From positions 124,001-188,000 of the IMG/VR virus record IMGVR_UViG_3300035661_000001: a stretch of 64,000 bases of DNA; one strand, 5' to 3'. The translations under genes and the position numbers were made by a program. The notes beneath the pieces were generated by a model. It did not search any database. It saw only the letters and a program-made list of their open reading frames with translations, and was not told where the DNA came from. This document shows, piece by piece, positions 757 through 4,332 of this stretch. Positions within the stretch are counted from its first letter, which is position 1; every line of letters starts with the position of its first letter.

Positions 757-832
757 GGCACTGTCGTATTTGTGGTCAAGACTCGGGTCTGAAAAGCCCA
801 GAAAAGCGGATCGTTACCGCTCGGTGCCACCA
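757..832 (+). tRNA. tRNA-Phe (GAA)
   Basis: Acceptor ggcactg/cggtgcc + ACCA; anticodon loop CT GAA AA; T arm agcgg-atcgtta-ccgct. Confidence 0.8.
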
Positions 833-844
833 AAACAAATTAAA

Positions 845-885
845 GAGGTGGGCTAACATAAGCAGCCATCCTATAATGAGTTGCG
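845..885 (+). ncRNA. 23S rRNA helix 43/44 (L11-binding GTPase centre)-like element
   Basis: gaggtgggc-taacat-aagcagccatcctataatgagttgcg versus conserved bacterial 23S GAGGUUGGCUUAGAAGCAGCCAUCCUUUAAAGA; intergenic, just after tRNA-Phe. Confidence 0.55.
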
Positions 886-942
886 AAAAGAATAAAGATA
901 GATTAAGAAGGCGTTAATATGAAATTTATAAGGAAAAGTTAA

Positions 943-1275
943 ATGTCATGGTGGTATGAACATCCAGAAGATTTGCAAAAATTATTGCAACCTAGTAGAG
1001 ATTTAGATAAGCAATTGATTAAACCTTTTGTAAATGAAAAGGGATATCTTGAACATTTAGATAAAAATGGTAAGATGATTAATGGATTACCAAAAAACAT
1101 TAGAATTAAATGTGGAGATTTAATGCAAGAAAGATTTCGCATCATAGATGAATATAATGGTACTCATCCAGGCAGTATATGCATAAAGTGTGGCGAAATC
1201 ATTTTAGCCAGTCAAAATGGTAAGTGTATGAATATTGCTGATTGCCCAGACGCACCGCCATTTATTGGAGGTTAA
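943..1275 (+). CDS. hypothetical protein
   Basis: 110 aa ORF with RBS-like aaggaaa upstream. Confidence 0.7.
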   Translation: MSWWYEHPEDLQKLLQPSRDLDKQLIKPFVNEKGYLEHLDKNGKMINGLPKNIRIKCGDLMQERFRIIDEYNGTHPGSICIKCGEIILASQNGKCMNIADCPDAPPFIGG

Positions 1276-3334: not shown

Positions 3335-3535
3335 GGAAAATATAAAAATGAAAAAAAATGATAATGCTTGTCGGTCTGTTGTGTATGATTGGCTGTACCA
3401 CCGCTACTAAAAATGATAAAATCATTTGTGCTATGGAAGATCCAGATCATCCAGGAGTATTAGTTGAAGTAGATTGTGACACTGGAGAACCTATTAAAAG
3501 TACTCCAAAAACCATTTCTGTAGAAATTAAGTAAT

Positions 3536-3742
3536 ATGAATGATGAAATTTGGAATGAAATTTATCAAGACTTGTATGATGAATGGTCTTCTGATGAAAT
3601 GACAGCGCCGTTCGACATTCATGAAATATCAAAAAAATATGATGTGAATGTCGATGATTTATTTAAAGAATTGAAAGAGCTATTTGATAAAGGTAATATT
3701 ATTTGGAAAAATACTATGAATACCAAATTTATATTCATTTAA
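3536..3742 (+). CDS. small acidic hypothetical protein (possible winged helix)
   Basis: 68 aa ORF. Confidence 0.55.
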   Translation: MNDEIWNEIYQDLYDEWSSDEMTAPFDIHEISKKYDVNVDDLFKELKELFDKGNIIWKNTMNTKFIFI

Positions 3743-4332
3743 GTGTTACCCCAATGTTCAATAGCATGACAATTGGCGCAAAGTATTTCTAAATTACTTT
3801 CGTCATCATTCATTCTATTCCTGTCTTTATGATGAACAATTATCGCTGCCGGATGTTCATCATAAAGACAACGTTCACAAGCTTTAGGTTTATTGGAAAA
3901 AGCAATGCGCCTATAATGTGAATGATCATCAGCTTTTGCGGTTCCAAAATGTGGGGGCATTATTTCTTTAATGCCACCAATACATTGTGCTGCATCTTTA
4001 TGAGCACGACAACAAAAGTATAACTTGCTTTTTGATAAGGCTTTTTTGGATGTAGTTTTATAAAATTTTGTGTGACAGAAAGCACATTCAACATTTGGTT
4101 CTGGTTTTGGTTCTAATGCTCTAGCATATAAACTTGCACAGCTTTGTGTACAAAATTTTCCATAACCTCTATTAATATCTTGTGAACGGGCATTAAATTC
4201 TTTTTGACATTTTAAACAATTTTGTTTTATGATTGGCATGTTGACCCCTTGTAATTTGCGCAAGTACCGTATGTTACACATAATAAGATATGCATAGATT
4301 GATATATAGTTTAATAGACACGGGGGTGTCAT
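3739..4332 (-). CDS. HNH endonuclease with N-terminal Zn fingers
   Basis: CERC..HHKDRNRMNDD..NLEILCANCHAIEH; repeated CxxC/FCxxxC; true start probably downstream (MPIIKQ). Confidence 0.85.
   Translation of the reverse strand: MTPPCLLNYISIYAYLIMCNIRYLRKLQGVNMPIIKQNCLKCQKEFNARSQDINRGYGKFCTQSCASLYARALEPKPEPNVECAFCHTKFYKTTSKKALSKSKLYFCCRAHKDAAQCIGGIKEIMPPHFGTAKADDHSHYRRIAFSNKPKACERCLYDEHPAAIIVHHKDRNRMNDDESNLEILCANCHAIEHWGNT

Follow-up and report, generated by a model that had tools for sequence, protein, structure and literature searches.

Positions 833-895 of the stretch of phage DNA studied here (64,000 nucleotides, hereafter the window) are very probably the 5' relic of a phage stable-RNA gene whose product is folded like the GTPase-associated centre (GAC, helices 42-44) of 23S rRNA. 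The window copy keeps only the front third of that gene, i.e., the 5' closing strand, helix 43 and the junction, and we infer that it has lost both the fold and the activity of a GAC mimic. Intact members of the family are carried by more than 200 viral contigs, MAGs and cultured phages. The sequence-only reading of the window, which had pointed to a miniature GAC inside a tRNA cluster, had caught a real and apparently undescribed RNA family, as is borne out by homologues, by covariation and by a match to 23S rRNA of a covariance model built from phage copies only (R1).

Genomic setting and raw resemblance to rRNA

The source phage genome, which comes from microbial-mat and sediment metagenomes, is complete and has 451,956 bp, direct terminal repeats, 36.5% G+C and 41 tRNA genes called by ARAGORN; the window corresponds to its bases 124001-188000. 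The candidate element lies in tRNA-rich surroundings on the plus strand. Its upstream neighbour on the same strand is tRNA-Phe(GAA) at 757-832, which was called by ARAGORN and has an Rfam tRNA score of 28.1 bits, slightly below the gathering score. Downstream is a 110-aa ORF of unassigned function (943-1275, plus strand, taken from the ORF list) that served as a synteny anchor; its homologue is P0002 on contig L004 (54% identity), and identical copies occur in five assemblies.

Two further tRNA observations concern this genome. A tRNA-like gene at 622-697 in the window is homologous to the tRNA-Phe(GAA) of L007, a relative described below, and shares about 80% identity with the tRNA-Phe of T4-like and T5-like phages. 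It has the anticodon loop CUAAAGA (anticodon AAA) and the T-loop CGCAAUA, it drew no call from ARAGORN or Rfam, and it is possibly a decaying duplicate that was replaced by the tRNA-Phe(GAA) at 757-832. Outside the window, at 80119-80195 of the genome (G000:C1), one of the 41 tRNAs has a CUA anticodon and is an amber suppressor, labelled 'Pyl' by ARAGORN, which hints at TAG read-through or recoding in this phage.

The letters quoted by the sequence-only reading were found at 845-919, 12 nt downstream of tRNA-Phe(GAA) (direct reading and ARAGORN), and they include the exact block AAGCAGCCATC, which is identical to E. coli 23S 1069-1079. The accompanying statement that no other rRNA-like sequence is present was confirmed for the window and for the whole 452-kb genome. 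As for the likeness to rRNA, relatives and covariance models establish that it is real, but the raw match by itself is at chance level. The window and E. coli 23S rRNA have 54 exact 11-mers in common, compared with about 88 expected under uniform composition. When 23S rRNA was compared with the phage genome by sensitive BLAST, the alignment was absent from the 40 best local matches, and dozens of others scored higher. None of the Rfam LSU models matched the window or the genome, either at the gathering threshold or at E <= 10. These include the bacterial LSU model RF02541, the search that had been proposed as a check, for which the window stretch does not reach the gathering threshold; no full-length rRNA gene is present. 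The chance test alone would have dismissed the rRNA likeness, and it was overturned by the relatives. The orthologue in L007 has a 21-nt exact match to 23S 1059-1079, and the window copy scores 24.8 bits against R1 (E about 7e-7, E-values of this model being rough).

A family of GAC-mimic RNAs in phages

An exact 19-mer of the conserved part occurs in 13 viral contigs, many of them from huge phages, with unrelated flanks on both sides. Two more features lie downstream of this first block. One is another conserved stretch, UUUGGCGUAAUAGCACAC, the GAC helix 44 hairpin; the other is a strand that can pair with the bases immediately 5' of the first block and whose sequence differs in every phage. 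A degenerate helix 43 pattern was found in 116 viral stretches, and a helix 44 pattern was found in at least 119, most of which are new loci. The helix 44 pattern also hit bacterial genomes and MAGs from many phyla, in 44 stretches, at least 30 of which are full-length by covariance model. Three independent pattern scans yielded 168 loci with both modules, and 81 elements whose ends and closing helix could be defined; the scans bias membership, and the motifs recovered are partly enforced by the patterns.

Intact members are single-copy and about 120-440 nt long (median about 220). From the 5' end they consist of a closing strand, A-GG and helix 43, which has a loop of 9 nt (the module as a whole reads AGG-N-GGC, the loop YUARARGCA, GCCAUC-N); next come the 1082:1086 lone pair (E. 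coli 23S numbering) and GAGU, followed by a variable stem insert of about 35-350 nt, UUU(G/A), the helix 44 hairpin GCGUA(A/G)(Y)AGC, ACAC and the second closing strand. RNAalifold, applied to 21 short members, recovered the closing helix, the lower and upper parts of helix 43, the base of the insert stem and helix 44. In a CM alignment of 91 distinct sequences, 95% of the cells are paired, compared with 30-57% in slid controls, and the double-change cells number 169, compared with 47 +/- 7 in shuffles, none of 500 of which reached 169. Homologues in related phages and covariation, both of which had been named as checks on the original proposal, are thus present for the intact family. Covariation is heavy in the closing helix and the insert stem, and there is next to no variation in upper helix 43 or in helix 44, which matches their behaviour in rRNA.

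Individual pairs were counted in a sample selected through the 3' module, so the counts are independent of the 5' module. Pair 1058:1080 is U:A in 34 members, G:C in 24, A:U in 14 and C:G in 2, and pair 1057:1081 is A:U in 69 and C:G in 6. The 1082:1086 lone pair, which is annotated in the Rfam LSU consensus, occurs as U:A (41), C:G (21), A:U (12) or another combination (2). Pair 1060:1078 remains non-Watson-Crick (U.U in 63, U.C in 11), and position 1061 is free opposite an invariant A1077. When R1 was run against the E. coli rrn locus, its sole match was 23S 1046-1113, at 43.6 bits, and the Rfam model LSU_rRNA_archaea gave a weak local match to an intact member in its GAC segment (model positions 1182-1231). 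The fine structure and the R1 match to 23S 1046-1113 together identify the family as a replica of helices 42-44.

The resemblance to the GAC of 23S rRNA (1051-1108) is close in detail. Helix 43 of intact members is near-identical to that of rRNA, with a 9-nt loop that holds the A1067 equivalent. Both RNAs have the U1060.U1078 mismatch, a variable position 1061, the 1082:1086 lone pair and A1088 within GAGU, and both have the helix 44 sequence GCGUAAYAGC, the C1092-G1099 pair and the A1095 equivalent. The phage RNAs differ from rRNA in being free-standing genes of 120-440 nt outside any LSU rRNA, in a lower helix 43 stem that covaries freely, and in having ACAC, i.e., A1101 rather than U1101. 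Moreover, the equivalents of U1090 and G1091 are separated by an inserted, variable stem domain, and helix 42 is replaced by a free closing helix. The sequence of this closing helix is not conserved, so the RNA does not reproduce the part of helix 42 that binds L10. The window copy differs further in being only the first third of the RNA.

Within the family, some members carry additional features. About 20% (e.g., L025, L028, L109 and L012) have an insert sub-motif, GCACCCCG-(U/G)AA-(N)-CGGUAAGGC, that forms a hairpin with a UAA bulge and might serve one clade as a second functional module. In L024, L032, L048, L053, L055, L062, L063, L079, L097, L098 and others, the 3' strand of helix 43 carries an additional hairpin of 10-59 nt directly after GCAGCC-A, and this position is a second tolerated insertion site. 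Among irregular copies, L147:202-479 consists of two tandem partial elements and L209:2164-2240 has no helix 43; thus, gene decay or rearrangement is not unique to the window. A search of the insert for a mimic of the sarcin-ricin loop gave only five weak matches. Rfam 15 has no dedicated family for intact members, and the phage RNA gene is apparently undescribed in Rfam 15 and the literature searched.

Genomic context and carriers of the family

A tRNA or tmRNA gene lies within 300 nt of 82 of the 168 elements, always on the same strand. Intact members are often found with tRNA, tmRNA or RNase P RNA genes on either side, in the same orientation. L018 has the order RNase P RNA, tmRNA, element, and L017 has the order element, tRNA, tmRNA. 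Intact, unannotated copies are present in several cultured phages, namely Pseudomonas phage pf16, where the copy (KU873925, 29414-29608) sits between tRNA-Asn and tRNA-Pro and scores 95 bits, Aeromonas phage 4_4572 (81 bits), Xanthomonas phage XacN1 (75 bits) and Cronobacter phage GAP32 (64.5 bits). BLAST matches over most of the element were also obtained in Astolliot, UNO-G1W1 and Milchi. The idea that a GAC-mimic RNA resides in phage tRNA arrays on the tRNA strand holds for the family, but the copy in the window, for which it was put forward, lacks helix 44.

Clustering of the ORFs within 3 kb revealed no conserved protein partner in more than 10 of the 168 loci. The largest neighbour family is a metallophosphoesterase (10 loci), followed by a CCA-adding enzyme (7 loci), and TerD-type genes accompany one clade. 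The recurrent neighbours are enzymes of RNA metabolism, and XacN1 has a 2'-5' RNA ligase. No phage-encoded L11, L10 or L12 scored above the cut-off, and no r-protein gene lies downstream of an element, so the arrangement is not of the L10-leader type (the window copy precedes the 110-aa ORF). Genuine 23S rRNA was found in some contigs filed as viral (L050, L102 and L105) and in GenBank 'phage' records H40-H56, and these 23S-bearing 'viral' contigs are probably host contamination or mis-binned fragments.

Anatomy of the window copy

The window copy begins at 833-845 (all coordinates on the plus strand) with the 5' strand remnant of the closing, helix 42-like helix, which aligns to L007:2742-2756. 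In intact members the 5' closing strand pairs, with covariation, with the bases after ...AGCACAC. In the window this partner has been deleted, and the CM alignment places no complementary 3' strand downstream. The helix 43-like hairpin, equivalent to 23S 1057-1081, follows at 846-872. As had been read from the sequence, its stem is retained (direct reading and CM alignment); pair 1058:1080 is G:C, and 1060:1078 is the U.U mismatch. Its loop, UAACAUAAGCA (854-864), has 11 nt rather than 9 and is aligned by R1 with a 2-nt insertion. A 9-nt loop is found in all other inspected copies, including ten found without any helix 43 pattern, the length being enforced by the pattern scans for most copies. 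The hairpin has a predicted folding energy of -11.9 kcal/mol (z = -2.1).

The junction AUAAUGAGU at 873-881 is equivalent to 23S 1082-1090 and has the combination typical of the family, pairing at 1082:1086 plus GAGU, with the tertiary pair in its A:U form, which 12 of 76 members in an independent sample also have. Of the inserted stem domain, only the first 14 nt are left (UGCGAAAAGAAUAA, 882-895); they are identical to L007:2790-2803 and end at the deletion junction, the microhomology of which is 888-895. The adjoining 896-942 is outside the RNA and comprises a Shine-Dalgarno sequence and the start of a small ORF, 95% identical to L007:3742-3784, a segment that contains the last part of an HNH gene as well as the ATG at L007:3773. 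The small ORF, which is homologous to the start of a 74-aa ORF in L007, is cut to 7 codons in the window (919-942).

The suggestion that 'ggcgttaata' at 910-919 might be the remnant of helix 44 did not survive this comparison. In L007 these bases are separate from the RNA, in the Shine-Dalgarno/ATG region of the 74-aa ORF, and the true helix 44 module is at about L007:2980-3003; moreover, 'ggcgttaata' is incapable of forming the G1091-C1100 and C1092-G1099 pairs. R1 matches window 835-912 by skipping 98 insert positions and 14 helix 44 positions, and its score of 24.8 bits for the window compares with 40-124 bits for intact copies and 74.9 bits for the L007 element. Pattern and CM searches for the helix 44 hairpin, UUU(G/A)-GCGUARYAGC-ACAC, gave no match in the window or in the whole genome, and the CM matched the complete 452-kb genome just once, so that no second copy of the element was found. 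Elsewhere, the missing 3' half has a single near match, a 13-mer, GGCGTAGTAGCAC, at genome position 10165 on the minus strand, which was rejected as it has no 5' module nearby.

Comparison with relatives and origin of the truncation

L007, a 240-kb metagenome contig, was fetched with the neighbouring proteins as anchors, and these proteins are about 54-64% identical between the two phages. Window 832-895 is 89% identical over 64 nt to L007:2742-2803, with 36 consecutive identical nucleotides. The window copy is orthologous to, and syntenic with, the intact L007 element (L007:2745-3006, 74.9 bits), and the flanking genes are common to both. By junction alignment and BLAST, the window tracks L007 as far as GAAAAGAAUAA (895) and then resumes at L007:3750, and the breakpoints carry the imperfect repeat AAGAA(N)AATAA on both sides. 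Compared with L007, about 940 nt are gone. They include most of the insert, helix 44 and the 3' closing strand of the RNA, as well as two tRNA-like genes, a 57-aa ORF, tRNA-Ile(GAT) and an HNH gene. Both L007 and L004 retain the 3' module. L004 was considered as a case in which the element is absent and was rejected as such, since this contig begins inside the RNA and the 3' module is kept.

The truncated form is present in four assemblies from different samples, and this recurrence across samples rules out an error of assembly. In run X8 (labelled 'RNA?'), a near relative is represented by a 188-nt contig that contains tRNA-Phe and the element with a canonical 9-nt loop, and its match ends at 895. 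The canonical loop in this contig indicates that the loop changes are recent and specific to the truncated lineage. The contig is no proof of transcription, and none of the RNA runs searched clearly contained this phage. In this phage lineage, the deletion very probably took place between the two AAGAA(N)AATAA repeats, after which the helix 43 loop gained a 2-nt insertion and two substitutions.

Other features of the region differ between the relatives. Directly 3' of the intact GAC-mimic RNA, L007:3010-3190 and L004:150-330 encode two tRNA-like RNAs of about 75 and 96 nt that have a GGTTCGA T-arm, one of them with a CCA end; they received no call from ARAGORN or Rfam, and they are deleted in the window. 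HNH-type endonuclease genes are scattered among the tRNA genes (window 3739-4332 on the minus strand; L007:1830-2516 and 3448-3771), and most of the rearrangements that set the window apart from L007 here come down to whether such a gene is present.

Discussion

The homology of the window copy, the architecture and covariation of the family, and the truncation are direct observations, and several readings of the element can be weighed against them. It is very unlikely that the window element is itself a working GAC mini-mimic, with helix 43 and a degenerate helix 44, that is co-transcribed with the tRNAs and serves to titrate L11/L10 or to soak up toxins. In its favour, neither the stem of helix 43 nor the junction is damaged (G:C at 1058:1080, A:U at 1082:1086), the element starts 1 nt after the tRNA on the same strand, the hairpin has a folding z-score of -2.1, and the relic is well conserved relative to L007. 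Against this, the element has neither helix 44 nor a closing strand, the supposed helix 44 is a ribosome-binding site that L007 carries separately, and the loop that holds the A1067 equivalent has 11 nt whereas every other copy seen has 9. It is established that L11 and thiostrepton require the helix 43/44 tertiary fold of the 1051-1108 RNA for binding, so a lone, altered helix 43 hairpin is unlikely to bind them. More improbable still is co-option of the relic as a promoter or 5' leader of the downstream ORF through TATAAT at 872-877. That hexamer is perfect, it lies 66 nt upstream of the ORF start at 943, and the surrounding 36 nt are identical to L007. Yet it looks as it does owing to the A:U version of the covarying 1082:1086 pair, which GC-rich phages have as well, and in intact members the same bases are internal to the RNA. 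No acceptable -35 accompanies it, and a scan of 550-1350 for sigma-70-type promoters (-35 and -10 hexamers with 16-18 nt spacing) was empty. Neither a promoter nor a terminator was called at the site of the TATAAT and the hairpin, and both were dismissed.

The remaining two alternatives concern the rRNA likeness itself. We regard it as highly improbable that a piece of host 23S rDNA was recently captured along with the tRNA genes. Identity to rRNA is very high in helix 43, and some 'viral' contigs do contain genuine rRNA fragments (L050, L102, L105), but the family has traits foreign to rRNA, namely the inserted domain, ACAC rather than UCAC and the free closing helix. In addition, the element is orthologous to that of L007, the family covaries where rRNA varies far less, and, in the Pseudomonas and Cronobacter phage copies, either 1058:1080 or the 3' strand of helix 43 departs from gammaproteobacterial rRNA. 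A mere chance match, to which the number of shared 11-mers (54) and the absence of an Rfam match would be congenial, has the least probability of all and was ruled out by the 21-nt exact match in the L007 orthologue, the R1 score of the window and the R1 match to E. coli 23S rRNA, in agreement with the hundreds of homologues. A point that sits uneasily with the preferred reading, that of a truncated relic, is its 89% identity to L007 when the neighbouring proteins are only about 54-64% identical, which could reflect a recent deletion, gene conversion or a retained role for the hairpin. In light of this high identity, there is a small chance that the relic has a residual role.

What might the intact RNA do? 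The isolated 58-nt RNA 1051-1108 folds alone and binds uL11 and thiopeptides, for which both hairpins are needed. The sequence features required for the L11/thiostrepton site are present in intact members and missing from the window copy, which has no helix 44. We infer that intact members work by molecular mimicry, in that they would present the GAC surface off the ribosome and thereby capture a factor that recognises the GAC, the main candidates being uL11 and a toxin or defence enzyme that targets the GAC. The most general candidate would be uL11, since its site is universal, and it would fit a core that is near-invariant across phages of many phyla. Alternatively, the partner may be a GAC-directed toxin, and the neighbourhood of tRNA and RNA-repair genes would fit a role in counter-defence. 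There is a precedent for such a toxin in Tre23, which ADP-ribosylates helix 44 at 1095-1098 (PMC8661411). Capture of uL11 would be expected to blunt the activation of RelA; the alternative target would be a toxin of the Tre23 kind, directed at the GAC by a defence system or a competitor. As a hypothesis, a decoy function of the intact family is plausible. The full proposal, that phages of many bacterial phyla encode an undescribed stable RNA that combines a stand-alone GAC replica with a variable domain, is co-expressed with tRNAs, tmRNA or RNase P RNA and acts as a decoy, is one that we hold only tentatively, as somewhat less probable than the contrary. The decayed copy in the window indicates that the gene can be lost.

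The family invites comparison with other RNAs that imitate or accompany parts of the translation apparatus. RNAs that mimic an rRNA site are known as cis-acting leaders of r-protein operons, and 'rRNA mimicry' is reportedly the subject of a review (Meyer 2018). Like the L10 leader (RF00557), the phage RNA imitates a protein-binding site of rRNA off the ribosome. The r-protein leaders are cis-acting, precede r-protein genes and bear a loose likeness to rRNA, whereas the phage RNA is not upstream of r-protein genes, is usually flanked by tRNAs and has a core that is nearly identical to rRNA. With the tmRNA and RNase P RNA of phage tRNA arrays, it has the same genomic niche and strand orientation in common. 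Those are functional whole cellular RNAs, in contrast to the phage RNA, which is one rRNA domain and not workable as a ribosome part alone. Pseudo-ToxI of phage PhiTE is said to be a phage RNA decoy, and bacterial Y RNA is reported to be a tRNA mimic. By analogy with pseudo-ToxI, the phage RNA is proposed here to be a look-alike carried by a mobile element that captures a protein partner. It differs from such decoys in mimicking a ribosomal functional centre, and it is known here from sequences, with candidates only for the partner.

For the window, the message is modest: the element is most likely a gene remnant. For phage genomics, the family accounts for unannotated gaps of 150-300 nt in many phage tRNA arrays, and it means that short rRNA-like matches in phage contigs are not always contamination. 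The family is present in cultivable phages with tractable hosts, including pf16 (Pseudomonas putida), GAP32 (Cronobacter), XacN1 (Xanthomonas) and 4_4572 (Aeromonas). The literature searched apparently contains no description of a whole ribosomal functional centre that is replicated by a phage-encoded, trans-acting RNA. If intact members bind uL11 or a GAC-directed enzyme, they would represent a new route by which phages manipulate or protect translation, and, if true, this would point to host defences that attack the GAC, analogous to the relationship between phage tRNAs and anticodon nucleases.
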